This document shows positions 3,901 through 30,310 of a DNA stretch of 64,000 nt, piece by piece (the stretch's first letter is position 1; the number at the start of each line of letters is the position of its first letter). This stretch comes from Trichoplax adhaerens (Eukaryota > Animalia > Placozoa), in contig NW_002060944.1 of the NCBI RefSeq assembly GCF_000150275.1, positions 313,614-377,613 on the forward strand. Direction: 5' to 3'. Position numbers and translations under genes: made by a program. The notes beneath the pieces were generated by a model, which was not told the origin of the DNA, made no database searches, and saw only the letters and a list, made by a program, of their open reading frames with translations.

Positions 3901-6900
3901 CAATAAAATAGTTACCTTCAATGCATATAGAGGCTGTTCTGCTAAAATATCTCCAAATGGTAAAATCATTGCATACGTAAGTTGAAAATGATCAACATAT
4001 TGTTGCATGGTGATTTGTAACTTTTATGCGGTTAAAGATTTTAAATGTAGTGGCTGGCTAAATAAATTTCACTATCGGAACACTTTACATCTTGCATAGG
4101 GCAAGAATAGTAAATTTTTGGTTTATAAGGGGATATGTATTGATGATATTTAAATTTTTAGTCATCAGTGCTTGAATAATGTTATTACATCAAGTATCTA
4201 TTAGATCTTACCCTTAGTAGAAAGATGGAAGACGTAAATCTGAATCAAGAATAATACTTTCATTTATTTCGCATCGAATTATAGCCAGACTCAAAATATA
4301 AATGGCAGGTGTGGCATATTGAGAAGCAAGTGTGGCTACATTTTGTAAGAGTAACACGAAAAGCAGACAAACCTTCTCCATTTCTAAAATGCAATGAGAT
4401 TGAATTCTCTCCGAATGATAATGATGTTATTATTTCATGGAATGGAAGAAAAGTGCAGGTATTTTATCGTAGTTCTTAGATCTTTGGGATATTGCTTATT
4501 ACTGTTGGCGTCGCCATCTAAAGTGGATTGATTACATCATAACTCGTTTATTGCTCCAAAATAATTACTTTATAAAGCGTAAAATTGTGAAACCTTAAAT
4601 ATTGAATGAGCATCAATTAATAGAGTAGAGAAAATTGCCTTGATAAAGGTAAGAGACTGTTATTGTGATGTGGGTTATTAATAAAGATGTGTAAATTCTT
4701 TTAAATTAGGTTTGGAAGTTAGTTGATGAAATCTTCCATTCGGATAAAACTTGGATTGCTCATCATAATGACATCTTGCTCTGCCAGTTTGTCGAGGGCG
4801 GTCAAAAATTAATCACTTGGTGCTTGTTTAAGCAACAGTATACCCCACTTAACGATCCTGGTCAGTTCATTCCAAAGGCATTAGGACTATCTTGGAATAC
4901 TGAATTGAAGGTAACCTTAATTTCTCCGAACTTACTATGTTGCCACAATTAAAACTGCATGCTAATTATATCACGAGGTAAAATATCAATAAGATTGAGA
5001 TATCATTGATATATTTTATTTCTGTTCTATACTAAAGTAAAAGTTCGCTGACCGTATAAAAATAAGAAATAAATTTGTTGTAAAGCAATCAGTTGTAAAT
5101 TAGCAAAGCATAAGTAGGTAAACATATTTTCATCGGTGAATTGGAGATTCATTCCAATCATCCATATTATAGTCAAATTTTAATATTCATGTTACTGTAT
5201 GATTAAAATCGATTCTAGAAATTAATGTTAATTCTAGCTGTAATTACTTTCATCTCTGTAGTAATTATTCAATTTTAAAGCGAATACTAGTGGTAACTGC
5301 ATATTGAAAAAAAGGAAACATGAGTATTATTCATTATTCTTTCCCTCGAGACAGGTTTGGTCTACCGAAAACTATAGAGAATTACAGAAGATTAAGCTAA
5401 AATATACCTTGTTTAGGAATCAGTTTGTAGGATTACCGACAGTTCTCTTCCAATTTGAATGCACTAAATACGTTAATAACGATTTATTACTCGTCGACTG
5501 TAGCAGTTCCGTCAGCGATCATAAATATTACACCGTACCATTACATGATTACAACGATAAAAATGGAATAGTCATAGAAAACTGTCGACCACCGTCAGAG
5601 TATCAATGCCAATATCTTGATAATATGGATAAAGTATCTATATTTGATAACGGTAAAGGCTTGGCAGGCTTATATTTGCAAGAAATTAAGGTCTGTTTTA
5701 GTAGATCGTCTGATTGACCCGTGTTTGTTGCCATTTTTGGGTTTTAAGCCTTTATTGCGGAGATTGGTGTTGAAAGATTTCTTAATTGTTTTGCGCACCG
5801 TAGATTTATTTATATGAACGTAATGGAATGGTACCCTACCAGACCATCGATTTAGGTGCCGATATTTTATGGCGAAGTTTTCAATTTGTTCCTGGTGCGG
5901 ACAATAGATTTATTTTCGCCGATACGGAACGATGCTACTTAGTTGCTATTAAAGACGACAAGGATCCAAAGCAAAGTAACCATTCAATTCCTGCTGTATT
6001 TGGCGACGTACAGTGCCAACGTCTTGAATTTATTGATGGTGTTATTGTGTGCGCCAAAATTATATCAACGACTGATGGAGAGCGATTTCTACAGGTTGGT
6101 CCTTTTTAGTACCTGTATAATATTGATTTCTAAAATTGTGCCTGGGTCTAGGAATAACTTGTTAGAGGAATGAATTTAATTACTACTGATATTTTAATTT
6201 TATCATATCGATTATAACAAGCTGTCTATGGATATAATCCTCAAATTTACCTAGATTCTTAATGATTTCAGATATAATATAGTTTCAATGATGAAGTAAT
6301 GACTCTTGTATAACCTTAGGTTTATAAAGGAGACGATTTTCAATTGATAGATCAAACTATTTTGCGACATGGTCGAAGAGCTGATGTTGGCGTTAATTGC
6401 CACTTATTTAAAGATTGGAATTACGTAGCAATCGTATATTTTATCGAACAACGCCAGGAATCACGACTCTATTTTTCAATTACGGTATTTTTTCGACGAT
6501 ATCTTGCAATAGGACTGAAGAGTATCCAGTTATTTTATCCATCATATTACATTTCTTAAATCATTCTATAGACTTAATTTTTACTTTTAAAGCATTGTAA
6601 AAAGTATTTTAGTGACGTTTATGAATGTGCTTTTGGCTATTTGCCATTTAAATTTTTTAAAGAATCAATGCATCTTTTAATTATACCAGATTGAATCAAG
6701 CAGTTAAATTCAATAATTTATGCTACTGCTGCATTCACTAAGTATCCCTTCATTTTTCTTTTGTACGATGGAAGTTGAAAGATTTAGATAACCTATCAGA
6801 AGATATGTGGACTGTTCATCACAAGTTGAAGTTAGATAAATTTCCCGAGATGCATTACTATAAATATCGGAAGAAGGATAATAGACTGATTATATATAGA

Positions 6901-8316
6901 TCTCGCACAAACATAGTACGTCATTTTTGGTGTATGATATTAGAGTTCAAAACTATTACTGTTGTGCAATCGATATTTCAGCCAAAGCTTAAGCTGGATT
7001 TTGTATTGCCATCATAAAGCAGCCAGTTTGGTTGAAATATTTCCTAATCTTGTTATAGTACGCCCTGGTATGGATCTTAAACTGTAGTAATGGAGAAACA
7101 TTGGCTACATTTTATATGAGATCCTGCGATACCATGAAAATTATGCACTTATTTAATCGCTATCTGATAGCAGCCTCGGCCGGTGGTCAAATTCATACGG
7201 TATGTCAAGTGGATTACTTTATTAAGCAACTCTTAGAAACTGCTCTAATAAAGTTTAATTTCATAATCGTAGTTTAAGCCTATGTAAATGTTATAGCGCA
7301 ACATGTGCATTATCGAATATCAAGATTAGCATATTTGAAGTTGATTAACATATTAATTTATTGCCTTAGCTTTGTTTTCTGCATGACGGTCTTTAGATAG
7401 TTAATTAGACTATTAAGTTGCTAAGCCGATGGTACTCTACTTTACTATTCACAAGTTAAATTGATTTACCTAGCAATAATTAGAATCATTCCTTTTGACA
7501 TTCACGGTATTAAGTAGGTCTGGAAATTAGATTCTAATTCCATTGAAATACTGGAAAAAATCCAACCAGATTTAAATGATATCAGTCTCTTATCTGTGTC
7601 TCATGTTGATATTACTGATACTGGTCCTAAAGTTCAAACAATATCAGTTCCGAAGCATAATGAATACTTCGATGGATGGCATATAGAATTTGAAAAACCG
7701 GTAAGAAAGATCAATAACCAAACTAAGATCTTTATAGGAAGATGCCGCTATATTAATGTACGCAATAACTATTCTGACCCTCTCGTCATCTGAAATCGGT
7801 AAAAAATTAGATGACTAAGAATGGCGTAGAAATTTATCGGGTTGAAAATGATCAACGGCAGCTAATTCAAAGCATGACAAATTTGAGCGGACAATCTTTA
7901 TTTATCGTTCGAAATGGGAAGGATTTTACGGTAACTGATCTCATTACTTTGCTTTTCATGATATAATTATCTTATACTGATATATAATTTTAAGTTAACG
8001 AACTTCCTTGATACTTTTAGGCATATAATAGTAACAACAATCTTTTAATGAAAGTCTACCGTGGAAAATACTGCTACCCTAGCCAACCATTGGAATATGA
8101 AGTCCAGCTATGGTCCGATAATGATCATACTCTAGCTACATATTATGACGAAACTATCCGACTTTATACCATCGAACATGAACATTGGTTTCATACCATC
8201 CAATCAAAAGAGTTAAAAGATCTGAAATTTATACAAATTAGTAATGAATTCAGTCTATGGGCCTATAAAACCTTGTGCTCCTGCCCTTACTATATCAAGC
8301 CTGTTTTACCTTCATT
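992..8316 (+). CDS. APAF1: APAF-1-like protein, multi-exon (end of HD1 / winged helix / HD2 / WD40-like propeller region). N-terminus unresolved; C-terminus probably continues into the micro-exon array
   Basis: Phase-consistent GT-AG exons: 992(or ATG 1000)-1087, 1475-1682, 2554-2860, 3009-3196, 3509-3659, 3890-3976, 4285-4458, 4710-4910, 5355-5690, 5804-6094, 6320-6484, 6775-6915, 7059-7199, 7518-7700, 7811-7930, 8021-8316. Translation LQLSIFEKGIPIPLTTISTFWEMSEDLVRSQLELIQKERL matches the APAF-1 winged helix. GYMHQQLVNHA..LLTNLHWIEVKFKA and DLIQFTLEHTADNELHHQAWQMA match the APAF-1 helical domain. ISPNGKIIA, EFSPNDNDVIISW..KVQVWK and AASAGGQIHTVWK are WD40-like. This is a divergent paralog, not necessarily the ortholog. 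Confidence 0.8.
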
Positions 8317-8844
8317 GTAAGTTTATAGATCGTACAAGCACGTTTTAATTGAAATATTATTAATGCATACCAAGGAATTTTATTTGATCATTCGAAACTA
8401 GATCACAAATATAATTGTGACTGTTTATGAGCTTCATTAAAGTCATTTGAATATTTACTCCTTTCTGTACCTTCTTGCATCGGTTAAAGTAAAGTATAAT
8501 ATTAGCAAATAATCTATTGTACTAACTGTAAATTTCAATTGAATCTTACCGAAAAAATTTAATTTATGTAAGCCACGTGTCCAATTTGTTTACTTTAGTT
8601 TGCTACTAGAGCTACTTTAAATATTTAATAATAATAGCTTGCTTAAATTTTGCTGAATAAGCATTGTATATTTGTATACCAGTAGATAATTTATCATGTA
8701 GTCCTTAATTATTGCTTTATCGTCCGCCATATTCGCTTAACATAGCTTGATAATCGCATACAACAAACCTTTAGTGTACAATTTTGGCTATTATAATTAG
8801 GAATTATTGATTTCGATTGTGATGATTCTTTTTGACTTGCTCAG

Positions 8845-11800
8845 TGATAACGTTGAAAATATACCAATCATAATCAAGCCTTCTTCCGATGAAATGTAAC
8901 TATAAATTTATATTACTCCATTATTTTGTATTTATCATATATTTAGGTGTAAATATCTATTTGATCTTGTTCGTGTATCTTATACGTGAACGCTAATGTC
9001 AACTATTACTTCTATAATCGGCAATTAGAGCATTTAGACAACAAAAAGTTCGCTTCAATGAAGGAGATTTGATCAATCAAGGGTAATGAATGAAATCATA
9101 TTATTTTTTCTATTGCCTGATAGAAACATTCATGTACTTCAATTAACGTAGTATAGCATAGCCGTAATTTATTCCTATGATATTATCTATGTCCGTTGCA
9201 GCAGCAAAAGCATTCCGAGTGCTTTCTTAGCTGTTTGAGGTTAATTGTGATGTTGTAGAATTGTAGTTATCTCGATCGATCAAGATCTAAAAATTTAAAA
9301 GCTATTCCTATTTAATCTAACAATGTTGTTATACTAACGAAACCAAATAATTTTGATCATCTGCCACTTAGATCCCCTTCAGTGCAGAATACTGAAGAAG
9401 AAAGTCAAGTTATTAGTGAAACCATAACGTCGCAAATGTAATGCATCAATAATATTTAGCGATATCATTTGCTGCTCGGTGATTCATGAATTTTATTTAG
9501 TTAATTTCAATCAAAGAATAACGGTAGCGTTCTCTATGCATTTCTAATTATATTCATGAATGCGGTTAGTTGATAGATGATAATATAGCTATTGCTTAAT
9601 TTAAGCCATGTCGCTTTGATATTTCTACTGGAACCAATGACTAAACATCTACTCAATTTATGTTAAACTTAAAGGTTGTAATTATGCCATATCTGTTCAT
9701 GGAAATTGTCAATGCAAATTATTTTTAATACTTATAGCTATTCCGATGAAATCACAACTGTAGCAGATGTTCATACTAGCTGCCAACTGTAAGTAATTCC
9801 TTGCTTAATAAGACGAAATTTGTAATCTACTGCACAGTTCCTTAAATGGTGTCGCACTTGATTTTTATTTTAGAAATTCTGGCAATACTATGATAAAAGC
9901 AAATTCCCCTCCGATTCATGGGTAAATTTGATAATCTTTATTAGCTATTAGTACTCTATATCATTGAAGATGTGTATTATAGCTGAACTGCAAGTGCTCA
10001 CTTTTCATTTTTTATTCCTACAATTTAGTGAAGAAAATGCTCAGAGTATATCTAAAAATACGTTTCAAAGGTTAGTTAAGGTTAAGATAAGGCACAGATA
10101 CGAAAACTTTATATAATATGCGGTACTTCTTGTATGTTAATAGTCAAGAAACTGCTCAAGACAATCAAGAAGATGTACCACATCAACGGTAAGTTATATT
10201 AATTTAAAATCGATATTCGAAAAAATTTTTTATTTCTCTGATACATTAAATTTAAAGTAACACAAATTCAATCTGGTTTATCCTAGCCCTTTGCTTAGTG
10301 GGGATAATTTGAAAACGTTTGCTCTAGAAAAAACATCTGAACTGTTCGTCCCTTTTTTTCAATTTGAAATTAATTATTCAATGCCAGTCTATTGGCAGAA
10401 GTAAGTTAATTAACCGATTGTTTAATATTGTATAGATCTAATTCCAAGCCTGAAAATGCTTTAGACATTGAAAAAAAGACAGTAAAGACCCCGTAAGTAC
10501 AATGCATCGATTAGAAGTGCTGCAAATATCAAATTGTTAAGCAGTCGAGCTAACTTACGTTTCTTAATTGCCTATTTCTATAATAAAATTTAGGTTTAAT
10601 TTTAAGCCGAAAAAGGCAGCAGAAATTGATTGGACAACAACAATGAAGCAACAGTGAGTATTTGGCATGTAGAACTAGTCTTGAATTATAATTTACCTTC
10701 AAGTGATGTTGCGATTGATTATTGATTTCTTCAATGTCATCCAGATTTAATTCTAAGCCAGAGAATGAACTGGAAATTGAAGAAAAGAAAATGGAACAAT
10801 TGTGAGTATTCTGTATTTATGAGAAATTGAAGATAATCTTATATCATGCTGCAAGTAATGTAGTAATAATATGGTTATATCATATTTATACCCTCCATAA
10901 TATTTAGATTTAATTCCAAGCTTAGAAATGAGCCAAAAGAGGATTGGCTGTCAAATAAACCACTGTAAGCATATTGCATAAATTTGAAATTTAAGATAGG
11001 CTCTGATTTTAATCGATGTTGAAATATTCTAAGTATTTCAAACTTAAATGCGTATTTCTTTAAGATCGCCAAAGTTAAATTCCAAGCCTAGGATTGAACA
11101 AGATAGCTACTGGACGATGAAAAATCTACAGTATGTCCCTTTAATTTTCAAGAGTTTCTCAATTTGTAGTGGCTGTTTAAGTAATGTGCCTACTTACGGG
11201 TGATTTCTTGAATACTACCTAGATTAAAATTCGACCATGATAATATCCCAGATATAGAAAAGAAGCTATCTAAAAAATTGTGAATACAATCTATAGATCA
11301 GAAATTAAAAATGTACTCAGATTGAAATTCTTTGACATTAATGCAGCTATTTATTGCTTATTTCTTCAATATTGTCAGATTAAATTCTAAGCCTGAATAT
11401 GTACCAGACATTGAATGGCAGGAAATGAAAAAACAGTATTTAAATTAATTAGACATTTAAGATGTTCTTACAATTAATTTCTAAATGAAATGGTCGTTTA
11501 TTACTTATTTCTTTCACGATTATTTATTTGCCTGTTGCCGGAATATCTCCCAGACAAAAGTCTAAGGAAGAAAATACACCTGAAATTGAATGGAAAACAC
11601 TGAAGCAACAGTGAGTATATTCGGTTCATTAGGGATGCACGATATTACCTGGCTGAAAGCATTATCGAAATAAAGTTTTTTCTTTAGGCAGCAGCGATCA
11701 TATTAGATGAATTGATTTGTAAGGGTTATTTAATACGTTTTTTCTTCCTTTAATCATTTAGTGAAGAAAGTGTTCGTAAATTTGATAAGAATACTACACT

Positions 11801-14075
11801 TCGACGGTATGAATATTTTTCTACATCCTGTAACATTAGTTTAATAAATCAGCATTCATTTTATTAAATACGTGTGCTCAAATACCGTTGAAGTTCTAGC
11901 CAGCAGAGCTACAAACTAACAGAAGAAGTATTACCCACTTTATTGTAAATATGCGTCCTAATAATCTTGAAACTGCATTGAGAACGTAAAAGTAGTTTAA
12001 GTTAATTGTTGCTTCATTACTATTTAAGCAATACCATGGAAAGTGTAGACCCTGTGGAAAAGTTACCAGTCTTTCAGCTGTAATTTATACGATTTTTTAT
12101 TTAAACACCTCTAAAACCTGTTACCAGCGTGAATATTGTTTTCAATTTTTTAACAACTCTTTCCGGAAATTTTAGTATTGATAGTATTGAAATTCTGGAT
12201 GAAAATTTACCAATTCCACTGTAATCGAATTATTTCCTAATTAACTATTTAATATCTTATCTTAGCGTAACTAGTATTTTGAAGGAAATTTTTCTTAAAT
12301 TCTAGTAAGGAAAATATGGAAATTCAAGACGAAAATTTGCCAATTCCGCTGTATTGAAGTTTTGCAAATTTATCGTGCTCAGTTACAAAATTTTGCTATT
12401 TATTGACATTTACGTATTTTTATTTAGAAATGAGGGGAATGAAACGTCTGTTATGAAATTGCTTGATCTGCTGTAAGTTTTCCATACTGATACATGGGAT
12501 TGTTAGAAAATACTCTCGGTAGATATGAACTTGGGTGATCAAACTCTGTACTTAAAATCAATTTAAATAAAAATATACTTCAGTTTTACAATTTACTAGA
12601 CTTAATACGTGAAATTATACGTATTTTTTATATAGAGACGAGGAAGGAGAAATTCCGGTAGATGTTTTACCTCTTCAGACGTGAGTTTTATAGCTAAAAT
12701 GATTTAAATTAAAACAAATTTTAATTTTTTAGTTAACTCTAGCATATTCTTAATTAGCGATGAGGGAAAGGAAACTTTGGCGGAGAATTTACCTATTCTG
12801 ACGTAAGTTTTTAGACTTAAAAATGAATTAAATTATTACATATTTAATTTTCGCAATTATGAAATTTCATGTAAGCTTTTGAATATTTTTATTTAGCGAT
12901 GAAAGAAAGGAAACTTCAGTAGAGGAATTAGCCGTTTTAATGTTTGTTTTATAGTTAAAACAATTTTAGCTAATCTAATTTGAATTTTATAATTTATTAA
13001 AATTTTATAAATAAATTTTTAAATATTTTACATAGAGAAGAGGAAAAGGAAGCTCCAGTAGAGAAATTTCCTGTTTTGGGGTGAGTTTTATAGTTAAAAA
13101 AGACTTAGGTAGGACCACCTTTAATTTTTAAAATTTGCTAAAGTTTATACGTATATTTTTATATCTTTCTATCTAGGAGCGAGGAAAAGGAGTGTCCAGT
13201 GGAAAAATTACTAGATATGACGTAAATCTTATAATTAAAATATTTAAATAAGAACATGTTTAGATTTTATAACGTATTAAATTTTATCATTAAACTATTG
13301 TACATATTTTAATCTAGCTATAAGGGAAAAGAAACTCCAAAAGAGAAATCACCTGTTTTGACGTGAATTTTATAGTCAAAATGATTTCAATTTAAACGTA
13401 TTTAAGCCTTGCAATTTACTAAATATACACGTAAACTTGTACATATTTTTATCTACGAGTGAGGGAAATGAAACTCCAGCTGAGAAATTACCGGTTCCGA
13501 CGTGAGTTAATTTATTAAAATATGTAGGATTTAAAGACACTGATGGCGCTAAGTTTGACTTAAGAAGTAAATTTTTTTAATTTTACCTTTCAGAAAGGAA
13601 AGCTTGGAACAACCAGATGAAAACCTAGCCAAACAGGCGTAATCCTTAATTACTGCTATCTTGAAATTAATTTTAGTTATCAAGGATATTAACATCCATA
13701 ACTTCTAATTAATTTTCTGTTTTTAATGCTTTTAAACCATAATTTAGCCATACTTTTGAAGAAAATACACAAGATGGCCGCATCAATAATGAAAATACAC
13801 AAGACAATATCGTTATTAATAACGACAATATGCAACATTGCCACATTAATAATAAAGATATACAAGATAGCCATCCTTATAAAGAAAATACTCAAGTATT
13901 GAACAGGGACGTCGCCATTCAACGGTTACTTACATAACAACTAGCAGCTTTTTGTTTTCGGCCATTGATTATGAGTGCTTATTGGCCTAATTCTATGTTT
14001 ATAAATATCTTATTTATTTTCTATGTAGCAGCGAAGAGCTTCCGAAATCAGAAAAAGACAAATTAGTTATTATTC
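8845..14075 (+). CDS. Array of ~31 symmetric phase-2 micro-exons (proximal part), acidic low-complexity peptide
   Basis: AG/GT-bounded stop-free units, approximate start(length): 8845(51), 9029(54), 9372(66), 9738(51), 9874(48), 10029(42), 10144(45), 10436(57), 10594(60), 10745(57), 10908(57), 11065(66), 11223(57), 11379(57), 11554(57), 11762(45), 11900(45), 12029(51), 12176, 12306, 12428, 12636, 12758, 12897, 13036, 13177, 13318 (all 45), 13460(42), 13594(45), 13748(177), 14028(48). Each reads 1 nt + n codons + 2 nt. Confidence 0.85.
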
Positions 14076-14133
14076 GGTAATTGAAATCATTTAACTAAAA
14101 TTATAGGATCGATGAAACGGTTGGAAATAAAGA

Positions 14134-15026
14134 NNNNNNNNNNNNNNNNNNNNNNNNNNNNNNNNNNNNNNNNNNNNNNNNNNNNNNNNNNNNNNNNNNN
14201 NNNNNNNNNNNNNNNNNNNNNNNNNNNNNNNNNNNNNNNNNNNNNNNNNNNNNNNNNNNNNNNNNNNNNNNNNNNNNNNNNNNNNNNNNNNNNNNNNNNN
14301 NNNNNNNNNNNNNNNNNNNNNNNNNNNNNNNNNNNNNNNNNNNNNNNNNNNNNNNNNNNNNNNNNNNNNNNNNNNNNNNNNNNNNNNNNNNNNNNNNNNN
14401 NNNNNNNNNNNNNNNNNNNNNNNNNNNNNNNNNNNNNNNNNNNNNNNNNNNNNNNNNNNNNNNNNNNNNNNNNNNNNNNNNNNNNNNNNNNNNNNNNNNN
14501 NNNNNNNNNNNNNNNNNNNNNNNNNNNNNNNNNNNNNNNNNNNNNNNNNNNNNNNNNNNNNNNNNNNNNNNNNNNNNNNNNNNNNNNNNNNNNNNNNNNN
14601 NNNNNNNNNNNNNNNNNNNNNNNNNNNNNNNNNNNNNNNNNNNNNNNNNNNNNNNNNNNNNNNNNNNNNNNNNNNNNNNNNNNNNNNNNNNNNNNNNNNN
14701 NNNNNNNNNNNNNNNNNNNNNNNNNNNNNNNNNNNNNNNNNNNNNNNNNNNNNNNNNNNNNNNNNNNNNNNNNNNNNNNNNNNNNNNNNNNNNNNNNNNN
14801 NNNNNNNNNNNNNNNNNNNNNNNNNNNNNNNNNNNNNNNNNNNNNNNNNNNNNNNNNNNNNNNNNNNNNNNNNNNNNNNNNNNNNNNNNNNNNNNNNNNN
14901 NNNNNNNNNNNNNNNNNNNNNNNNNNNNNNNNNNNNNNNNNNNNNNNNNNNNNNNNNNNNNNNNNNNNNNNNNNNNNNNNNNNNNNNNNNNNNNNNNNNN
15001 NNNNNNNNNNNNNNNNNNNNNNNNNN
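14134..15026. other. Assembly gap (893 N)
   Basis: Run of N. The equivalent sequence is present in the second copy at ~22557-23590. Confidence 1.
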
Positions 15027-18000
15027 CAATGGATTGGTAATCTATGTTATGTTATGGATTCTATTGAAACTTATATCGGTAGACTAATTGTATTGGCTAG
15101 TTTAGGAAATCCTTAATTCTGAATTGGTGCTCTTTTCGCTATCAAAAATTTTAACTAAGATTGATTATACCATACTGGCTTCTACAGTATTTTCTATGCC
15201 CGATGTTACGTTTTAGAACCAGAAATAGTTATATTCACTTTGTATATCACTCATCCATATACTTTGTCTAGCTTAAATCACATTTTCATAACTATTTTAC
15301 TCACTAATGTTTGCAAGATGTTCCCATGATCAAGGTTTAAGTATTGAATATATAGGGTTAAGCGTAAACACACTTGAAATATCGTAAGATTTTTATAACT
15401 ATTTCTCTTATGACTTAAATATTTAGTAACGAAAATGTTGTAAATGCTGATAAAGACATAGTTAATAATAAGTAAGTAAATGATATTAAATGGCTAGAAT
15501 TCATCTTTTGGTTGACATTATTAAAAATACAAGATTTCGCGTTTTGAATTTTATAAAATTATAGAGCAGAAAAAGGGCAAATTGTAAAAGAAGATTCGTC
15601 TGATATTGCGTAAATAGCGTTTTTAATTCTCGTAAACCTCAATATAATTTTTTAGTACGTTTCTCTTGTAATAAATCTAAGCTAATTCATTAATAGTAAC
15701 GTTGACACTCGCGAGAAGGTGGATAAAATTAGAGCAAAGAGGTAATTCGAACGTATAAAATATCGCGTAAGATGTAATTCTTTACATCAATAGTTGGATT
15801 AAAGTATGATAAATTTTAAAAGTAAAAGTTTGCTTATTTTAGTGAAGAAATCATGCAAGAGACTAAAGCTGATTCCTCGAATATTACGTATGACATATAC
15901 CAGTATTTATAAATTTCTTGTCAAGTTTGTAATTTCCTGCTTATATTACGATTCTACGAAATGTAAATTTTGTCGATAGAAATGCTCAAGTTAAGGATAT
16001 TCCAATTGAAGTTTATAGGTAATTTTCAAAGTATTGTGTTCGAACAAATAGATGGTTATATTACGGCTTCTGCGTTATCTCCTAGACATACAGGAGGAAT
16101 TGCATATTTAGTATGATAAATATGAATGGATATGATTTGCTTATTGTAAATTATAGAGACAGAGTCCAAATCAATATGGAAGCTGCAATTAAAATGGCGT
16201 AATTTATACATTTTATATTTATAAATTGCTGAGATAAAATAAAACTAATTCTTTACATAATTTATATTATAGAGAAGAAAGCTTCGAAAATACTGAGAAA
16301 AGTTCATCCAATATATCGTAAGCTATATTTTTACTCTCATAAACTGCTGCTATAAAAGATAAATTTTACTGTTTTGCATATTTTTCCTTGCAAGCTACTA
16401 TGATGAAATATAAATTTAAACGTTTATCATTTTAAATGTAGAGAAGAAAGTACCGTTAACATTAAGGGAAATTTATCTAATGTCATGTAATTCATGTTTT
16501 TATGCTTACAATATACGCCACTTTATATTTATGTAATGCTATGTTATAACATAGCATTACTTATAATCCGCTTTGCTTAAGTTCTAGCGATCGAAATATC
16601 CAAGTCTTGAACGATTAGCTTGGAGCCAATTAAAAATTTCAATCTTAATTGCCTATTAACTCCGAGCTTAACTTTAATTCTGACCAAATACAGAAATTAC
16701 GCAAACTAGAAATTAACATTTTTATAATTTATTATGTGCTAAAACAATTTTATTTTACACGGAGTAATCTTTTATGAACATAAGTGATAAATTTTAGTAC
16801 TAACTGCTAGGCTGCTTTTCAATTTAATAAGATAAAGCACATTTTTCTATTTATGTAATGTAGTAAAGAACCTGGGCAAAGCCCTGATTTCAATTTAGCC
16901 TCTACATCGTATGTTTATTTCCGCTAGATTGCTTTGATAACATTTTCGTTAAATTAGCTTCACCTTCTAGTAATTTCAATTTTTACAGTTCCAGTATTAA
17001 TAACCGAGAAATTTGCAATAAGGAGAAGCGGTAATGATGATGAAGTCAATTAATTAGCTTGTAAATTTGTTCGATTGCATTTATATAACTATTTTATCAA
17101 TTACATTATCGTAATTTCATTGTGGTAAACAATTTACATTAAAATTTTGAACAATTTCGAAACGGCTTCTAAATGATGTAAATATTTATAATTCAAAAGT
17201 CACTATGGGCTTAAATTTTCATAGCCGTATGTTAAAATTATTATCATACTTTCTTAAAAGCTGGTAAAAATCTATATAGATTGTTATTGATAGCCTAAAA
17301 AATAATCGACCCTGAGATTTTCTACCGTTATTTCAGTCCTGAACAATCTAATGATCATGACGCAAGCTATCAAAATCTTCAAGAATCGAGGTATGGAATA
17401 CTCTTACAATTTTATCTTACATTCTATAACTACTCAGCAGTATTAAAATTAAATTTTGACTTGAAAAGATATTATTAATTTTCAGTTCAGTAGAAGATTC
17501 TTGCTCGATAATTAAAAAATCACCTCGTTCGAAGTAAGAAATAGATAGCTGGCGGAATGTATCAAGATAATATATATTTATTGACATACTTTGCATACGT
17601 AATTTATTTTTTAAATGATGACATTATGGCTTTTAGAATTGCTAGGAATGGTATAGATTCAGTGGATGATTGTTTAGCTCAAGAGCGGTAAGACAGAATT
17701 TAGCTAGGAAATTACTATAACAATTACAGCTATGTACAATAGGTAGTATCGAATTTTGCAACGTGTAAACTAAAACCGCACTAACATCAATAATATCAGA
17801 ACTACGGAAAATATTGATTTAATAGAAGATCCTTTAGCCCGAAAGAAGTAAGGCATGCTCTGAATACTAAGATGTCAGATCATAAATCTACTACTAGTTA
17901 TAAGTATGTACTACAGATTGCAATATATTACGTAATTTATAATTGGTGCTGCTTATAGAGTTACGCAAGACATCAGTTTAACGGATAATTGCTCATTACA

Positions 18001-19439
18001 GGAGGAGTAAGTTTAAACTATGTCGAAATAACATCCAATTGTAAATCTTGGATAAGATTTTTTAAGAGAATTTTTTATTGTTTAAGCTTAAGTCATGTCC
18101 ATTATTTAGTATTGCAGAAATAAGTGTCAGCTTAGCTGATAAACAGTCTGCGCAAGGGAGGTAAGTCAAATAAGGTTCCAGAATATAATAAAGCTATAAT
18201 AAATTCTATTACCAAGGGTAGCTGCAAATAAACTGATATAAGGTCAACATTATCATTAGCTCAGAGCTGTGCAAGTTAATGTTGTTTTAGTTGATAATTA
18301 ATAATTAATCAGTCATGACAAGAAATATTTTTAAACAAATTTAAATCGTCATATGTCGGAATAGTTTTAATTATCTTAGGATAGGAGTTAATGGCCATTT
18401 ACCGTACAAAAATAAATTAGGGCACAATTTTTTATTTTAGAGCTACAGAAGAAGTTATCGACTTGGTAGATGATGGCTCACGTCATTGGTATGATATGAA
18501 ACTGTATTTTGCATTCACTGGTTTCATGGTTTTGCTTATAGAGAAGCTTACAACTATGCTGGTTATATATATATATCTGATGAATAATTCATTCTTTTTT
18601 TGTTAGTATCAGTTCTGGAGAAGAAGCTCTTAATTTACCACATGATAATTCGAGCTTACTATGGTACGACAAACTTGTGGTTGCGAGCAATTAATTTTTG
18701 TGGATAAATTATTTTTAATCGTGGGCACAAAGTATCTCTAATCATTCTTTCACTCTACAACAAAGCAATGATTAATCATTATACTGTATTATTAGTTTAC
18801 AATATGTAGAATAAAGCAAAATCTTCAATGACAATTTAAAAAAATTGCACTGTTGGATAAATCTGACTATTTCGTATTTTTAATTTTGTCTATTGCGATA
18901 GTTACTACGTATCCTATATAAGTTTTGCTTTACTACGCAAATAAAATTATGTTAATAAGATACAGCTAATTTTGCGCTTATAACTGCTAGTGATGAAAAC
19001 ACTCAACAGCTTCTTGACAATTCCATCAAGCAGATGTAAATATTTTCTTGTCATTATCATGAGCTGTATATTATAGATCAGGATGTATTTAGTCCTGTAC
19101 ATTTAAAATCCAATGTGAAATATTCTCTAGCAGGGAAAATTCTATAGTAATAACTATGCATATTCGTTGCGATTTTATTTGCTATTAAAGTGATAAAAAC
19201 AATCACACCAGGGAGAATGAGATCGGAAGTTGCGAAGAAAATTCTACATATCAATCGTAAGTGAGACGATCATCAAACGAACCTAGTAGTCTATGATGAG
19301 TGTTGCTTACTGAGCTAAGTGGTCAATGAACTGGTATAAAATGAAGTTTTATAGCGAGTAATAAATTTAAATTCCTTTTTCCTGCAGTTCAGGTTCTATT
19401 GAAGGAGGTAATGGTTATGTAGAGTCTGTCAACCGGTAA
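15027..19439 (+). CDS. Micro-exon array, distal part, copy A (~22 phase-2 exons plus a putative terminal exon 19388-19439)
   Basis: Same AG/GT, 3n, phase-2 pattern, e.g. NENVVNADKDIVNN, EEIMQETKADSSNI, TTENIDLIEDPLARK. Homologous to 23591-28141. Confidence 0.75.
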
Positions 19440-21318
19440 AGTTGAAAGAACCTTTAGCCGAATCTTCAAACTGCTTTGAAAGACCTGTTCATCTCTTGGA
19501 AACATTTGTTTTATCGTAGAATAAGTAAAATAGATATGGATGAGTCTGCACTTAGATTCATAATAACTTAGTAATCTTTTCGCTGTAGATTGGATTTGCA
19601 ATATCATTTTTTCCTTATTGTTATGATCTATTCTTAGTTGATACTTTGCTTTAAATTGCAATAGATATATTAAAACACTTATGATCAATAAGCTTAGATA
19701 GCTTTCAGTTTTATAAATTAAATTTGAACAAATGCCATTCTAATTCTGTATTAGTTTCATGCCGATTTCTACTATATTGATTATGTGATATTTTCCTTTG
19801 GAAATTGCGGTGTTGCTTGTAATTCGTAATTTTGATCAATAAATATAATTGGGTACGGAACATATATAGATTTCTCTATTTTCTTCTATTTAAATAAATT
19901 ATAAATCTTTCACTTGGGATATCTGAATGAATCTTTTCTTTTCCGTGTAAAATATTCATAAAAATAAGGTATGGGTTATTGCAATATCTTAAGTAATATA
20001 TATGACATAGAATTGAATCCGCTCGAATCTCTAAAATTTAGTAAGTAACAACACAGATAAAATAATAAATTCAAATTCTATCATAGTTCTTTGTACCTCG
20101 ATTTAATATATTGCTTCTGTACCGTAAATGGGATTATAGTAACCAGTCTAATATAAATTGTAGTAATTGAACACTTATACCGGTTTACTATATTTTAAAA
20201 ATAAAATTCTGTTTATTCTAATGCCGTCAAAAAGTTACGAGATAAATTAATTTTTAACTACTGTACGTAATTTGATCGACCTAAATTATTAAATTTTAAC
20301 GATTGAAAACGGCCGTGACTTGTACAGTTAGTCATTCCATAGTCTGTAATAGAGTAACAGAGGGATGTATATTACATAGCTTGGTGAGGATAGTGTATCA
20401 GTCGATACACAGATTTATAATTAATTAATTATATTATGAACTGCTGCTTGAGGGTGAAACTCTAATTTTATGATTGCCTACATAGAGATTAGTTCTCAGG
20501 CGCTTAACTTATATGAAAATAAAACTAAATTAGCTATAAAATATCCACATAGTCGATTTTACCATCAGGTCGCGATGCAGTGTGTAGCAAGTAAACATCT
20601 AATTGTACTTTTACTGCTATCGATTAAACCTTCCGCACGAAAATATTAAAATTTGAATGTATGGTTTCGTAGGATGTGTCTTCGTGAAGCCCGATTTTTG
20701 TATGATACCTATTCGTAAGTGCCGAAATATATAGTACTGTACGAGCACTTGCGTGATAATTTTTGGTAAAATCCCGGGAAACGCAAAAAAAGTTATCTCT
20801 AGTCATGAATCTATTTATCTAACGAAGTTATTCCAAAAGATTAAGCAGCGATAATAAGCAGCTCCATCATTCTCTAAAATCACAGTGGTATGATACATCT
20901 CATAACTGATGCCGCTATTTTAGAGTGTACGCGTAATTTAGAACTAAATGATGTCATCGTATTGATTTGAAATTGGGTATTGTCGTGTTCAGCTCACGAC
21001 AAGGAAATCTGGGTCTTTAAATCCGTATAAATACTAAGGCTATAACAGCCAAATGTGCCCCCAATGGGTTAAGAGTAGACTAGACTTATGCTTTTAAATT
21101 AGTTTATTAAATCAAGGTAGTCTTGACATCCAAGACTACTCTAACTACACGCGTATACTATACGGTCAATCGTCAACTAACTAGCTAATGAGAGCANNNN
21201 NNNNNNNNNNNNNNNNNNNNNNNNNNNNNNNNNNNNNNNNNNNNNNATGATTAATTATTACATATTTAATTTTCGCAATTATGAAATTTCATGTAAGCTT
21301 TTGAATATTTTTATTTAG

Positions 21319-24300
21319 CGATGAAAGAAAGGAAACTTCAGTAGAGGAATTAGCCGTTTTAATGTTTGTTTTATAGTTAAAACAATTTTAGCTAATCTAA
21401 TTTGAATTTTATAATTTATTAAAATTTTATAAATAAATTTTTAAATATTTTACATAGAGAAGAGGAAAAGGAAGCTCCAGTAGAGAAATTTCCTGTTTTG
21501 GGGTGAGTTTTATAGTTAAAAAAGACTTAGGTAGGACCACCTTTAATTTTTAAAATTTGCTAAAGTTTATACGTATATTTTTATATCTTTCTATCTAGGA
21601 GCGAGGAAAAGGAGTGTCCAGTGGAAAAATTACTAGATATGACGTAAATCTTATAATTAAAATATTTAAATAAGAACATGTTTAGATTTTATAACGTATT
21701 AAATTTTATCATTAAACTATTGTACATATTTTAATCTAGCTATAAGGGAAAAGAAACTCCAAAAGAGAAATCACCTGTTTTGACGTGAATTTTATAGTCA
21801 AAATGATTTCAATTTAAACGTATTTAAGCCTTGCAATTTACTAAATATACACGTAAACTTGTACATATTTTTATCTACGAGTGAGGGAAATGAAACTCCA
21901 GCTGAGAAATTACCGGTTCCGACGTGAGTTAATTTATTAAAATATGTAGGATTTAAAGACACTGATGGCGCTAAGTTTGACTTAAGAAGTAAATTTTTTT
22001 AATTTTACCTTTCAGAAAGGAAAGCTTGGAACAACCAGATGAAAACCTAGCCAAACAGGCGTAATCCTTAATTACTGCTATCTTGAAATTAATTTTAGTT
22101 ATCAAGGATATTAACATCCATAACTTCTAATTAATTTTCTGTTTTTAATGCTTTTAAACCATAATTTAGCCATACTTTTGAAGAAAATACACAAGATGGC
22201 CGCATCAATAATGAAAATACACAAGACAATATCGTTATTAATAACGACAATATGCAACATTGCCACATTAATAATAAAGATATACAAGATAGCCATCCTT
22301 ATAAAGAAAATACTCAAGTATTGAACAGGGACGTCGCCATTCAACGGTTACTTACATAACAACTAGCAGCTTTTTGTTTTCGGCCATTGATTATGAGTGC
22401 TTATTGGCCTAATTCTATGTTTATAAATATCTTATTTATTTTCTATGTAGCAGCGAAGAGCTTCCGAAATCAGAAAAAGACAAATTAGTTATTATTCGGT
22501 AATTGAAATCATTTAACTAAAATTATAGGATCGATGAAACGGTTTGGAAATAAAGATATTTCTTACCTTTTGGACTGTGCTACTTGCGTATAACTTTTAG
22601 GAAAGAAAATTATCAAACTTTGAAAATTAACGCTCTAGACTACTCGTAATACCTTCTTACGTTAACATAAAATATTTGCATTACTTTTGTTTAGTACCTT
22701 TAAAATACTTTTATCTGTAATCAAACCATAATGTTACCACCGTCAGAAATTCTAGTCATCCGTTTATAAGATCTATTATTATCTGCTCTTTAGAATCATA
22801 CTGCGATATTTTGCTTTAATGTGCATTCTTGCAACTTTACAGATTTGAATATTTAATGCTGACATATTCATTTCTTAAAAGTCGTAATTGTCCATAACTT
22901 TTGCTGCAGGAAAAATGGAGGGCATGATAAATTGATAGAAGATAGCTCAAATATTCGAAAGTAAAATCGTCACAAAATTTTGTTGGTTTAACTCGTTAAC
23001 AAATACGACTAGATTTTGTTTTTAATTTCAGTAATTGTGTGGAACTTGAAACTCAGAATGATAGTTCGGAACCTCAGAAGTAATTTGATATACGTTATCA
23101 ATTTAATTGCTTTAAAGTGCGCAATTTAACTTACACATATGTCAAATACTGTAGTGAAAGAAATTTGAACATTATTGACAAATCTGAACCCGTTATTGGG
23201 TAACTTGAACATATTTGGTATCCTTCATCCATTAACAGCTTTCAGAAATGTTGTTGCTTTTACTCGTATTTTACTTATATAGGCTCGTATCCGTTAATAA
23301 AGCGAATACCAATATACTTACTCCAAAGTAATTCATAAATTTCTCATATTGATATTAGAACGTAAATTATTTCACTCAGAAAAATTAATGAGTTTGTGAG
23401 TTAATTTTATTTACTCCTAAATTATTAGGCTAGAAAATGGTAACATTCCTGAAAGAAATTCATCTCCTCGGTAAATATTCATTGCTTTAGTATTTTGTAG
23501 AGATGATTATCGCTTTAAAGAATTTATGTGCTTTCTATAAACCTACAAGTTGCACTGAAGAAAGTGTTCCAATGGCCGAAGAAAATTCAGCAATGGATTG
23601 GTAATCTATGTTATGTTATGGATTCTATTGAAGCTTATATCGGTAGACTAATTGTATTGGCTAGATTAGGAAATCTTTAATTCTGAATTGGTGCTCTTTT
23701 CGCTCTCAAAAATTTTAACTAAGATTGATTATACTATACTGGCTTCTACAGTATTTCTTATGCCCGATGTTACGTTTTAGAACCAGAAATAGTTATAGTT
23801 ACTTTGTATAGCATTCATCCATATACTTTGTCTAGTTTAAATCACATTTTCATAACTATTTTACCCACTAATGTTTGCAAGTAGTTCCCATGATCAAGGT
23901 TTAAGTATTGAATATTCAGGGTTAAGCGTAAATACACTTGAAATATCGTAAGATTTTTATAACTATTTCCCTTATGACTCAAATATTTAGTAACGAAAAT
24001 GTTGTAAATGCTGATAAAGACATAGTTAATAATAAGTAAGTAAATGATATTAAATGGTTAGAATTCATCTTTTGGTTGACATTATTTAAAATACAACATT
24101 TCGCGTTTTAAATTTTATAAAATTGTAGAGCAGAAAAAGGGCAAATTGTAAAGGAAGATTCGTCTAATATTGCGTAAATAGTATTTTTGATTCTCGTAAA
24201 CCTCAATATAATTTTTTAGTATGTTTCTCCTGTAATAAATCTAAGCTAATTCATTAATAGTAACGTTAACACCCACGAGAAGGTGGATAAAATTAGGGCA

Positions 24301-27300
24301 AAGAGGTAATTCGATAGTATAAAATATCGCGTAAGATGCAATTCTTTACATCAATAGTTGGATTAAAGTATGATAAATTTTAAAAGTAAATGTTTGCTTT
24401 TTTCAGTGAAGAAATCATGCAAGAGACTAAAGCTGATTCCTCGAATATTACGTATGAAATATAGCAGTATTTATAAATTTCTTGTCAACTTTGTAATTTC
24501 CTGCTTATATTACGATTCTACGAAATGTAAATTTTGTCGATAGAAACGCTCAAGTTAAGGATATTCCAATTGAAGTTAATAGGTAATTTTCAAAGTATTA
24601 TGTTCGAACAAATAGATGGTTATATTACGGCTTCAGCGTGGTAATTTTCAAAGTATTATGTTCGAACAAATAGATGGTTATATTACGGCTTCAGCGTGGT
24701 AATTTTCAAAGTATTATGTTCGAACAAATAGATGGTTATATTACGGCTTCAGCGTTATTTCCTAGACATACAGGAGGAATTGCATGTTTAGTATGATAAG
24801 CTGAATGGATATGATTTGCTTATTGTAAATTATAGAGACAGAGTCCAAATCAATATGGAAGCTGCAATTAATATGGCGTAATTTATACGTTTTATAATTA
24901 TAAATTGCTGAGATAAAATAAAACTAATTCTTTGTATAATTTATATTATAGAGAAGCAAGCTTCGAAAATACTGAGAAAAGCTCATCCAATAAAACGTAA
25001 GCTATATTTTTGGGCTTATAAACTGTTACTATAAAAATACTGTTTTACTGTTTTGCATATTTTTCCTTGTAAGCTACTATGATGAAATATAAATTTAAAC
25101 GTTTTATCATCTTTAAACATAGAGAAGAAAGTATCGTAAACATTAAGGGAAATTTATCTAATGTCATGTAATTCATGTTTTTATGCTTACAATATACGCC
25201 ACTTTATATTTATATAATGCTATGTTATAGCAACGAATCTGCTTTGCTTAAGTTCTAGCGATCGAAATATCCAAGTCTTGAACGATAAGCTTGGAGCCAA
25301 TTAGTAATTTCAATCTTAATTACCTATTAAGTCCGAGCTTAACTTTAATTCTGACCAAATACAGGAATTAGGCAAACTAGAAATTAACATTTTTATAATT
25401 TATTATGTGCTAAAACAATTCTATTTTACACGGAGTAATCTTTTATGAACATAAGTGATAAAATTTTGTTCTAACAGCTAAACTGCTTTTCAATTTAATA
25501 AGACAAAGCGCATTTTTGTATTTGCGTAATGTAGTAAAGAACCTGGGCAAAGCCCTGATTTCAATTTAGCCCCTACATCGTATGTTTATTTCCGCTAGAT
25601 TGCTTTGATATTATTTTCGTTAAATTAGCTTTCACCTTCTAATAATTTCAATTTTTACAGTTCCAGTATTAATAACCGAGAAATCTTTAATAAGGAGAAG
25701 CGGTAATGATGATGAAGTCAATTAATTAGCATGTAAATTTGTTCGACTGCATTTATATAACTATTTTATCTATTACGTTATCGTAATTTCATTGTGGTAA
25801 ACAATTTACATTAAAATTTTGAATAATTTCGAAATGGCTTATAAATGACGTAAATATTTATGATTCAAAGTCACTATGGGCTTAAATTTTCATAGCCGTA
25901 TGTTAAAATTATTATCATACTTTCTTAAAAGCTGGCAAAAATCTATATAGATTGTTATTGATATCCTGGAAAATAATCGACCCTGAGATTTTCTACTGTT
26001 ATTTCAGTCCTGAACAATCTAATGATCATGACCCAAGCTATCAAAATCTTCAAGAATCGAGGTATGGAATACTCTTACGATTTTATCATACATTCTATAA
26101 CTACTCAGCAGTATTAAAATTAAATTTCGACTTGAAAAGATATCATTAATTTTCAGTTCAGTAGAAGATTCTTACTCGATAATTAAAAAATCACCTCGTT
26201 CGAAGTAAGAAATAGATAGCTGGCGGAATGTATCAAGATAATGTATATTTATCGATAGACCTTGCTTACGTAATTTATTTTTTAAATGATAACATTATGG
26301 CTTTTAGAATTGCTAGGAATGGTATAGATTCAGTGGATGATTGTTTAGCTCAAGAGCGGTAAAACATAGAATTTAGCTAGGAAATTGCTATAACAATTAC
26401 AGCTATGTACAATAGGGAGTATCGAATTTTGCTACGTATAAACTAAAACTGCACTGCCATCAATAATATCAGAACTACGGAAAATATTGATTTAATAGAA
26501 GATCCTTTAGCCCGAGAGAAGTAAGGCATGCTCTGAATATAAAGATGTCAGATCATAAATCTACTACTAGTTATAAGTATATACTACAGATTGCAATATA
26601 CTACGTAATTTATAATAACTCGTGCTGCCTATAGAGTTACGCGAGACATCAGTTTAACGGATAATTGTTCATTACAAGAGGAGTAGTTTAAACTTTGTCG
26701 AAATAACATACAATTGCAACATCCAATTGTAAATCTTGGATAAGTTTTTTAAGAGAATTTTTGATTGTTGAAGCTTAAGTCATGTCCATTATTTAGTTTT
26801 GCAGAAATGTGTGTCTGCTTAGCTGATAAACAGTCTGTGCAAGAGAGGTAAGTCAAATAAGGTTCAAGAATATAATAAAGCTATAATAAGTTCTATTACC
26901 ACGGGTAGCAGCAAATTAACTGATACAAGATCAACATTATCATCAGCTCAGAGCTGTGAAAGTTACTATCGTTTTAGTTGATAATTAATAATTAATCGGT
27001 CATGACAAGAAATATTTTTAAACAAATTTGAAGTCGTGATACGTCGGAAGAATTTTAATTATCTTTGGATAGGACTTAATGGCCATTTTCCGTACAAAAA
27101 TAAATTAAGGCCACAATTTTTAATTTTAGATCTGCAGAAGAAGGTATCGACTTGGTAGATGATGGCTCACGTCATTGGTATGATATGAAACTGTATTTTG
27201 CATTTACTGGTTTCATGGTTTTGCTTATAGAGAAGCTACATCTATGCTGGTGATATATATATATCTGATGAATAATTCATTTCTTTTTTTGGTAGTATCA

Positions 27301-28141
27301 GTTCTGGAGAAGAAGCTCTTAATTTACTGCATGATAATTCAAGCCTACTTTGGTACGGCAAACTTGTGGTTGAGAGCAATTAATTTTTGTGGATAAAGTA
27401 TTTTTAATTGAGGGCACAAAGTATCTCTAATCATTCTTTCATGCTACAGCAAAGCAATGATGAATCATCATACTGTATTATTAGTTTACAATATGTAGAA
27501 TAAAGCAAAATCTTCATTGACAATTTAAAAAAATTACACTGTTCGATAAATCTGACTATTTCTTATTTTTAATTTAGTCTATTGCGATAGTTACTACGTA
27601 TCCTATTTTAGTTTTGCTTTACTCCGCAAATGAAATTATGTTAATAAGATACAGCTAATTGTATTGTAGCTAATTTTGCGCTTTATAATTGCTAGTGACG
27701 AAAACACTCAACAGCTTCTTGACAATTCCATCAAGCAGATGTAAATATTTTCTTGTCATTATCATGAGCTGTATATTATAGATCAGGATGTATTTAGTCC
27801 TGTACTTTTAAAATCCAATGTGAAATATTTCCTTGCAGGGAAAATTCTATAGTAATAACTATGCATATTTGTTGCGATTTTATTTGCTATTAAAGTGATA
27901 AAAACAACCACACCAGGGAGAATGAGATCAAAAGTTACGAAGAAAATTCTATATATCAATCGTAAGTGAGACGATCATCAAACGGACCTGGCCGTCTATG
28001 ATGAGTATTGCTTAGTGAGCTAAGAGATCAATGAACTGGTATAAAATGAAGTTTTATAGCGAGTAATAAATTTAAATTCCTTTTTCCTGCAGTTCAGATT
28101 CTATTAAAGGAGGTAATGGTTATGCAGAGTCTATCAACTAG
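21319..28141 (+). CDS. Micro-exon array, copy B (8 duplicated proximal exons, 28 distal exons, putative terminal exon 28093-28141)
   Basis: Distal exons, approximate start(length): 22910(51), 23032(48), 23155(45), 23283(45), 23429(42), 23550(51), 23882(39), 23990, 24129, 24261, 24407 (45), 24544(39), 24836(42), 24952, 25123, 25259, 25535 (45), 25661(42), 26008(54), 26157(48), 26308(51), 26473(48), 26635(48), 26797(51), 27130(48), 27296(57), 27695(45), 27896(66). All are phase 2-2 and stop-free. Confidence 0.8.
24582..24755 (+). repeat. 58-bp perfect tandem repeat x3 in an intron
   Basis: Unit ggtaattttcaaagtattatgttcgaacaaatagatggttatattacggcttcagcgt at 24582, 24640 and 24698; single copy at ~16018 in copy A. 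Confidence 0.95.
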
Positions 28142-30310
28142 TAAAGTTGATAGAACCTTCAGCTGAATCTTCAAGCTGCTTTGAAAGACCTGTTCATCTC
28201 TTGGAAACATTTGTTTTATCGTAGAATAAGTAAAATAGATATGGATGAGTCTGAACTTAGATTCATAATAACTTAGTAATCTTTTCGCTCTAGGTTGGAT
28301 TTACAATATCATTTTTTCCTTATTGTTATGATCTATTCTTAGTTGATGCTTTGCTTTAAATTGCAATAGATTTATTAAACACTTATAATCAGTAAGCTTA
28401 GATAGATTTCCGTTTTATAAATTGAATTTGAACAAATACCATTCTCATTCTATATTAGTTTCATGCGGATTTCTACTATATTGATTACGTGATATTTTCC
28501 TTTGGAAATTGCGGTGTTACTTGTAATTCGTAATTTTGATCAATAAATATAATTGGGTACGGAACTTATATAGATTTCTCTATTTTCTTCTATTTGAATA
28601 AATTATAAATCTTTCACTTGGGATATCTTAATGTATCTTTATCTTTTCCGTGCAAAATATTCATAAAAATAAGGTATGAGTTATTTCAATATTTTAAGTA
28701 ATATATAAGACATAGAATTAAATCCGCTCGAATCTCTTAAATTTAGTAAGTAACAACACAGATAAAATGATAAACTCAAATTCTATCATGTTGCTTTGTA
28801 CCTCGATTTAATATATTGCTTCTGTACCGTAAATGGGATTATAGTAAACAGCCTAATATAAATTGTACTAATCGAACACTTATACTGGGTTACTATATTT
28901 TAAAAATAAAATTCTGTTTATTCTAATGCCGTCGAAAAATTACTAGATACATCAATTTTTAACTACTGCACGTAATTTAATCGACCAAATTTATTAAATT
29001 TTAACGATTGAAAACAGCAGTGACTTGTACAGTTAGTCATTCCATACTCCGTAATAGAGTAACAGAGTGATATATATTACATAGCTTGGTGAGGATAGTG
29101 TATCAGTCGATACACAGATTTATAATTAATTAATTGTACTATAAACTGCTGCTTGAGGGTGAACTCTAATTTTATGATTGTCTACTTAGAGATTAGTTAT
29201 CAGGCGCTTAACTTATATGAAAATAAAACTTAATTAGCTATAAAATATCCACTTAGTCGTATTTTACCATCACGTCGCGATGCAGTGTACTGCAAGTAAG
29301 CATCTAATTGTACTTTTACTGCTATCGATTAAACCTTCTATACGAAAATATTAAAATTTGAATGTATGGTTTTGCAGGATGTGTGTTCGTGAAGCCCGAT
29401 TTTTGTATGATATCTATTCGTAAGCACCGAAATATATAGGAGAATTTAGTGAGGAAAATGGAAAATACGATGGACATTGGCAGAGATCGTGTTGATTGTT
29501 AAGTAGTTGGACTGTTGTTTTATGACTAAATCTTGATGTTTAAAGGTTGATTTTTAGACTTTTATAGTGTATTAATGATAAAAATTATGTTAGAAGTGAA
29601 GTTTGATGTATTTTTATAGTTAGCTTGTTAGTTCTATAGTGTTATGTAAGGGAATCATAGGGTAAATTGTGTCTGAACTTTGAGTGATTTTTGTTTTCTT
29701 AAATGGTGCAATGTAGTTTTGTAAAACGGATCTTAAGAGCGATTGGTTAGCAAATGTTTAGTTTTAAATACCTCTGACGGCTCTACGAAGCTTGTAAATG
29801 ATAGTGCAATTAGAAAATTTAGAGGGAGAGTAGAAGAAGATTTTACTTGAAGAACTTGTTGAATTTAAAAGGCCTTCGGGGTCGAATCGTCGTAAGTTAG
29901 AACGTTCTTCTTTTTGAAAGGTTGTTTGGTCATTGACAGTTTTTAAGTCTGTCATTTATTTTAATAATACTTAAAGCTAAGTATTTGCAAGGTCGTTCGG
30001 TTTATACTTCTCTCGATTTTTGTTTTGTAATAAATTGTTGTTCGGTTATTTCCCCAAATTTTATTATGGTGTCAAAGTATTAGCGTTAAGTAGACCGTAA
30101 TGCAACGAAAGTAGAAGCAAAGTTTGTTAAAGTTTTGTAGCTTGATCTCTACACTTTTCATTTCATTACATAAGAAATTTCCTCTTAGAAAATTATGCTA
30201 TGCGTATGAGTTAAGGCTTTTTTTCATAGGAAATTCTGCAAAATACCTAAAGTATTTCAGGTATTTTGCCGAATGCCAGATTTCGCAAATTGCCGTTGAC
30301 ATATGTTAAA

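Follow-up and report, generated by a model that had tools for sequence, protein, structure and literature searches.

Described Apaf-1-like genes and the locus under study

Placozoan genomes have an unusually expanded set of Apaf-1 genes, with paralogues arranged in clusters (Kamm et al. 2019, PMC6321704); WD40 and TPR are the only ends in the placozoan repertoire of locus tags and domains that the supplement of this survey lists. The present work concerns one Apaf-1-like gene of Trichoplax adhaerens and the array of micro-exons that lies behind it, in a window of 64,000 nucleotides (RefSeq assembly GCF_000150275.1, contig NW_002060944.1, positions 313,614 to 377,613 of the forward strand). Like placozoan Apaf-1, Dark and Apaf-1, this gene codes for a CARD at the N-terminus, for an APAF-1 helical domain and for a propeller-like C-terminal region, and it belongs to a paralogue cluster. 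No NB-ARC ATPase core was detected in it, and the putative disordered acidic extension of about 850-900 residues considered here is not described in that survey (PMC6321704).

Plant NLRs carry integrated decoy domains, and NLRP1 contains a protease "tripwire" region. By analogy, and in line with the decoy or protease bait suggested in the sequence-only reading of this locus, the tail would be another extra, fast-evolving module on a STAND-type death or immune sensor. In plant NLRs and NLRP1, however, the module is a folded domain or a short linker whose target has been shown, whereas the one considered here would be a low-complexity tail whose attachment is putative. Schistosome micro-exon genes and titin PEVK-type arrays contain long runs of symmetric small exons, which encode disordered and variable protein and suit cassette splicing. 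The array in the window is likewise a long run of symmetric small exons. Unlike those of schistosome micro-exon genes, which measure 6-36 nt, its exons are 45 nt or longer, and no signal-peptide or secreted frame was found for it. No sequence similarity was detected between the array and anything outside the locus.

A further comparison lies in the same gene cluster and family. A neighbouring paralogue also possesses a large symmetric array in phase with the flanking Apaf-1-like exon; that array is internal, of phase 1 and located in an intron whose position is shared with the window gene, whereas the array studied here would be C-terminal and is of phase 2 and unrelated in sequence.

On balance, we lean towards the reading that a conserved splice donor, which overlaps the stop codon of the Apaf-1-like gene, can splice into the array and so give a long acidic-tailed isoform beside a tail-less one. 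If this is true, animal sensors of the apoptosome/NLR type would include a new architecture, in which a long and fast-evolving acidic tail stands behind a ligand-sensing propeller. Together with the internal array of the neighbour, it would show recruitment of symmetric exon arrays into immune or death receptors. If two separate genes are present, the locus is an ordinary gene end beside an unannotated gene for a disordered protein.

The stop codon of the terminal exon lies within a consensus splice-donor sequence

The terminal propeller exon follows an acceptor (ttttag/G) at 8020/8021, is open in one frame and ends TCA TT/GTAAGT. Re-reading of the sequence agrees with the sequence-only reading of this locus on three points: the donor is of phase 2, the four propeller exons before it (6775-6915, 7059-7199, 7518-7700 and 7820-7930) both start and end in phase 0, and read-through past 8316 gives TTG TAA, with the TAA at 8318-8320. 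The unspliced protein would end ...VLPSL. That retention of the intron yields a form without a tail, as was also proposed there, is true, but the same applies to every phase-2 GTAA donor and is not peculiar to this one.

In the AT-rich window (about 30% GC), only 0.45-0.55% of stop triplets stand in a GTAAGT context. The chance overlap of a stop codon with GTAAGT is thus about 1 in 200, and a match in phase by chance would be a further 1 in 3. Among 32 donors of the array, GTAAGT makes up 19%, and GTAAG is present in 22%. Joining 8316 to 8845 would create the codon TT+T (Phe) and introduce no stop. No other phase-2 donor or ATG exon occurs in 8321-8821, and no Rfam family was found in the putative intron (8317-8844) or in the array.

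The donor is retained in a distant orthologue, as judged by comparison with one sequence, P0006 on contig L008 (the word-index searches returned P0006 and P0001 only). Between P0006 and the window gene, the terminal exons share 71% amino-acid identity, with pN 0.15 and pS 0.80. These values indicate that the exon is under strong purifying selection, and at such a pS synonymous sites are saturated. The 3' flank of the stop is 32% identical, which is the random level; 8317-8844 is not conserved. The orthologue ends at the identical codon, where ATG TAA GC gives G/GTAAG again. Since neutral sites are saturated, this amounts to an almost independent second observation. By estimate, a functional donor makes the two donor observations and the phase match a few hundred times more probable than a plain stop would; this estimate allows for the purine preference after stop codons. 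These observations are the chief argument for a fusion.

A pyrimidine-rich tract with CAG is located about 190 nt past the stop and donor of the orthologue (L008:478-524), and phase-2-open codons (TDDLQ...) follow as far as the end of the contig. The stretch may represent the orthologue's first micro-exon, although it is too short to judge.

A phase-2 micro-exon array on the same strand

Symmetric exons were scanned with fixed splice-site thresholds in the region of 8.3-30 kb. On the plus strand, 64 of the 77 symmetric candidates are open in phase 2, as against 10 of 20 on the minus strand, while regions other than this array have symmetric-exon counts at background. Most of the plus-strand exons have a single open frame and stand in sequence that is not repetitive. 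As the sequence-only reading had stated, the array is of phase 2; it is also strongly non-random and on the same strand as the Apaf-1-like gene.

The acceptor of the first micro-exon at 8845 is strong (ttgctcag/; pyrimidines at 14 of 18 positions). The exon encodes a motif, ENIPI, that is similar to ENLPI in the exons at 12176-12802. Given this acceptor and an EN(I/L)PI motif common to later exons, it looks like an exon of the internal type, which would need an upstream donor. The predicted tail is of low complexity and, as previously suggested, acidic: D+E amount to 20% and K+R to 11%, with a net charge of -77 over 854 residues.

Genome searches covered the 105.6-Mb assembly of 1,414 contigs and found no sequence similar to the array elsewhere in the genome, by which a dispersed repeat is ruled out. 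A relationship with the neighbouring phase-1 array, which lies past the right end of the window, is also ruled out, the sequences being unrelated. The TPR gene at 39.3 kb, of which the array might form the 5' part, was set aside on two positional grounds, a distance of 10 kb and intervening minus-strand open reading frames (ORFs).

How the tail would arise can be outlined as follows. The gene is an Apaf-1-like paralogue of Trichoplax that codes, in this order, for CARD, winged-helix/HD2 and beta-propeller; its ancestral stop would have become embedded in a functional 5' splice site, TT/GTAAGT. When this donor is used, the TAA would be spliced out and the phase-2 frame would run on from 8845 into about 50 symmetric exons of 45 nt. 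The spliced form would then carry, C-terminal to the propeller, roughly 850-900 additional residues of acidic, low-complexity sequence. With the donor unused, the protein would end in VLPSL, tail-less as in the paralogues. The composition of the tail points to a disordered, acidic extension, which at the propeller could mimic or shield ligand, or could act as bait. In an extended and rather doubtful version, the donor-embedded stop would be a tail/no-tail switch on a death sensor, the roughly 50 micro-exons would be cassettes for a haplotype-variable bait or autoinhibitor tail, and antisense RNA would modulate the use of the tail.

Two versions of the distal array

The distal part of the array occurs twice in the window: 12831-20734 corresponds to 21253-29439, with 3-8% divergence and a different number of repeat units. 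At 12800-13200, where both versions are 100% identical, the DNA run X1 has half, not double, depth. The second version probably represents the other haplotype, placed in tandem during scaffolding. A perfect tandem repeat of 58 nt x 3 at 24582-24755 is present in the second version only; the first has one unit, at 16018-16119.

Exons of the two versions mismatch at 5.2% of positions, as against 6.2% outside exons, and the codon changes comprise 15 synonymous and 27 non-synonymous ones. The near-equal divergence of exons and introns, together with these codon changes, implies that constraint on the array acts on frame and composition and not on sequence.

Observations against the join and alternative explanations

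The sequence-only reading had taken the array to be fused to the C-terminus of the Apaf-1-like sensor. This proposal has gained a conserved, in-phase donor and a real array of the same phase, while the join of 8316 to 8845 in mRNA would still be a prediction, and several of the points gathered in this section weigh against it. Conservation of the donor was observed in a single orthologue. A purine after the stop codon is a common termination context, which makes the argument from conservation somewhat weaker. The putative intron of 528 nt is longer than any intron of the array (median 96, maximum 300). To judge from the mismatches above, the two versions of the array have diverged almost neutrally.

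An in-frame ATG at 8822 could serve the array as a start of its own. Its frame is open into the exon at 8845 (MILFDLLS+DNVENIP...), and ATG-extended versions exist also for the exons at 9738, 10029 and 10144, so the earlier statement that no separate start exon is present does not hold. A convincing signal-peptide exon was not found for the array, in agreement with the same reading: the ATG-extended candidates turn out to be polypyrimidine tracts in translation. These starts favour two adjacent genes: the Apaf-1-like gene would end at the TAA, the GTAAGT there would be a chance occurrence, and the array would encode an acidic disordered protein from ATG 8822 or a later ATG. The first exon of such a gene, however, would not need the strong acceptor seen at 8845. 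The ATG and the internal-exon features of 8845 roughly cancel out.

The paralogues bear on the same question. The terminal exon has two paralogous exons on the same scaffold, L002 and L003, and the orthologue of L002 is P0001/L009. All three sequences end 5-8 residues past the same YYIKP-type strand with plain stops (TTT TGA, GAA TAA and TTT TGA), and neither a donor at the stop nor an array downstream is present in the paralogues. The sequence downstream of other Apaf-1-like genes had been proposed as a check on the fusion, and it does not favour it. From these comparisons, the tail-less end is the family norm and the ancestral state. The tail would then be an innovation in the lineage of the window gene. 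GT motifs 10-12 nt past the paralogue stops were considered as a family-wide intron behind the stop and rejected, as the motif of L002 is not kept in its orthologue.

For two genes speaks further that the position of the stop is kept within 3 codons across five sequences, donor-less paralogues included, and that an ATTAAA motif lies about 115 nt downstream of the window stop. Such a gene pair would nevertheless require the coincidence of about 0.5% described above, a second G-TAA-G in a saturated orthologue and the 1-in-3 match in phase. Two genes are the main alternative to the fusion, though the less probable account. A local precedent raises the prior for a tail: exon arrays occur within Apaf-1-like genes of this cluster. 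In the next paralogue to the right, symmetric exons of phase 1 are enriched upstream of the winged-helix exon (L006: phase 1 in 15 of 17 candidates), and the phase-1 acceptor of that exon is at a position homologous to the window acceptor at 1475.

Transcripts were examined in three metatranscriptomic RNA runs (X5-X7), which were mapped on 7400-13399 together with the DNA run. No joint from 8316 was found in X5-X7, in reads or in contigs, and sense splicing was seen nowhere in the array within this region; antisense RNA was seen instead. The introns of the Apaf-1-like gene itself are left unspliced in these runs, whose contigs span 7400-7813 and 7907-8247. Because sense splicing of either gene is lacking in them, X5-X7 cannot test the join of 8316 to 8845. 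Four further RNA runs (X8-X11) have a word share of 0.10-0.17, as exon-only coverage would give. One RNA contig runs unbroken over 8283-8842, which speaks for two genes; an antisense intron lies in this interval, at 8468-8546, and the contig may derive from the antisense transcript.

All five joints in the RNA are CT..AC, that is, canonical GT..AG introns of the minus strand. The antisense transcript is at least 6.8 kb long and runs across the array as far as the 3' end of the Apaf-1-like gene (8283-13399 plus about 4 kb beyond). Its contigs have a depth of 7-15, and the five introns are used in differing combinations among the runs. Its longest ORF, 92 aa, is within shuffle expectation; the transcript is apparently spliced and non-coding. 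These features would suit a locus that is chiefly one of non-coding antisense RNA, with the sense micro-exons as relics of a dying gene that are joined to nothing. Such relics would hardly account for the excess of phase-2-open symmetric exons on the plus strand, mostly in one frame and in non-repetitive sequence, and contigs cannot show the absence of a rare sense mRNA. This explanation is very improbable.

Another explanation accepts the donor and gives it a different partner: a 3'-UTR (untranslated region)-type intron or a short alternative last exon, the array being separate or rarely or never translated. The conserved donor, the want of evidence for a sense mRNA of the array and the weak constraint on the array sequence would all fit, as would the acceptor-like tract of the orthologue, about 190 nt past the donor as against 528 nt in the window. 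On the other side, the nearest strong in-phase acceptor is that of the first array exon, and a frame kept open over about 50 exons needs selection for translation. Splicing to a partner outside the array is improbable.

The Apaf-1-like gene upstream of the array

Three clustered Apaf-1-like paralogues on scaffold C1413 have winged-helix, HD2 and propeller exons in common. The first coding exons of the window gene are those that bear the CARD, and they lie outside the window on its left. In Pfam searches, the CARD match is split across two consecutive exon frames, 3.5 kb to the left of the window: the first piece covers positions 1-35 (E 0.017) and the second positions 46-85 (E 4.8e-5, 23.7 bits against a cut-off of 23.9). 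The APAF-1 helical domain (HD2; APAF1_C, PF17908) was found by Pfam in the frame 2486-2902 (E 6.3e-11), and a second match, to the end of this profile, lies in the frame 3009-3197 (E 0.038; 14.4 bits, under the cut-off of 22.8 bits).

A genome-wide six-frame search with PF00931 (NB-ARC) gave no match at the window locus or at either paralogue, and three NB-ARC proteins of Trichoplax, used as tblastn queries, gave no match for the core either. Only short frames occupy the 4.4 kb between CARD and winged helix; small, diverged NB-ARC exons may lie there. Judged from the domain matches, the label Apaf-1-like holds for the CARD, HD2 and the propeller-like region.

The terminal exon had been described as part of a WD40 region. 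Pfam WD40 gave no match with single exons of the window gene; the terminal exon matches WD40 repeats of bacterial STAND proteins (E 1e-5 to 1e-3). A phmmer search with this exon against 1.84 billion representatives returned five weak matches, none of them a full-length Trichoplax gene model, and an exact look-up of the window's own ORF gave no record.

Coordinates of features and other observations in the window

Table 1. Features of the Apaf-1-like gene, the micro-exon array and related loci. Positions are those of the window, except for the last row, which gives positions on scaffold C1413.
Feature	Position	Strand	Basis or remark
Terminal propeller exon	8021..8316	+	Begins in phase 0; use of the donor would put its end in phase 2; 99 open codons
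GTAAGT consensus 5' splice site over in-frame TAA 8318-8320	8317..8322	+	Sequence
528-nt intron (fusion) or 3' UTR plus intergenic spacer (two genes)	8317..8844	+	Two model-dependent readings
In-frame ATG, candidate independent start codon	8822..8824	+	23 nt upstream of the 8845 acceptor
Micro-exon array, about 50 symmetric phase-2 exons, mostly 45 nt, median intron 96 nt	8845..19439	+	Splice-site scan
First micro-exon, 51 nt, phase 2-2, peptide DNVENIPIIIKPSSDE, donor GTAACT	8845..8895	+	Splice-site scan
Second micro-exon, 54 nt, phase 2-2, weaker donor GTAATG	9029..9082	+	Splice-site scan
N gap within the array	14134..15026		
Likely terminal array exon with stop	19388..19439	+	Sequence
Distal array, second version (92-100% identity to the first)	21253..28141	+	Sequence; directly after a 50-N gap, 21197-21246
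Span with five antisense introns	8468..11648	-	RNA joints
Antisense introns	8468-8546, 10770-10891, 11139-11218, 11270-11471, 11580-11648	-	GT..AG
Apaf-1-like loci on C1413	248.9-259.1 kb (L013); 310-322 kb (L011+window); 376-404 kb (L006/L010/L007)		

Other genes were observed farther along the window. A single frame of 739 codons on the plus strand (39315-41531) encodes a TPR_12/TPR_10 repeat protein (E 2e-157) and has no NB-ARC in frame. An intronless ORF of 326 aa on the same strand (59661-60638) belongs to the rhodopsin family of GPCRs (G protein-coupled receptors; 7tm_1, E 1e-15). Two minus-strand frames of about 80 codons, at 35022-35261 and 44967-45200, are about 70% identical to each other in DNA and belong to the repeat family D17.

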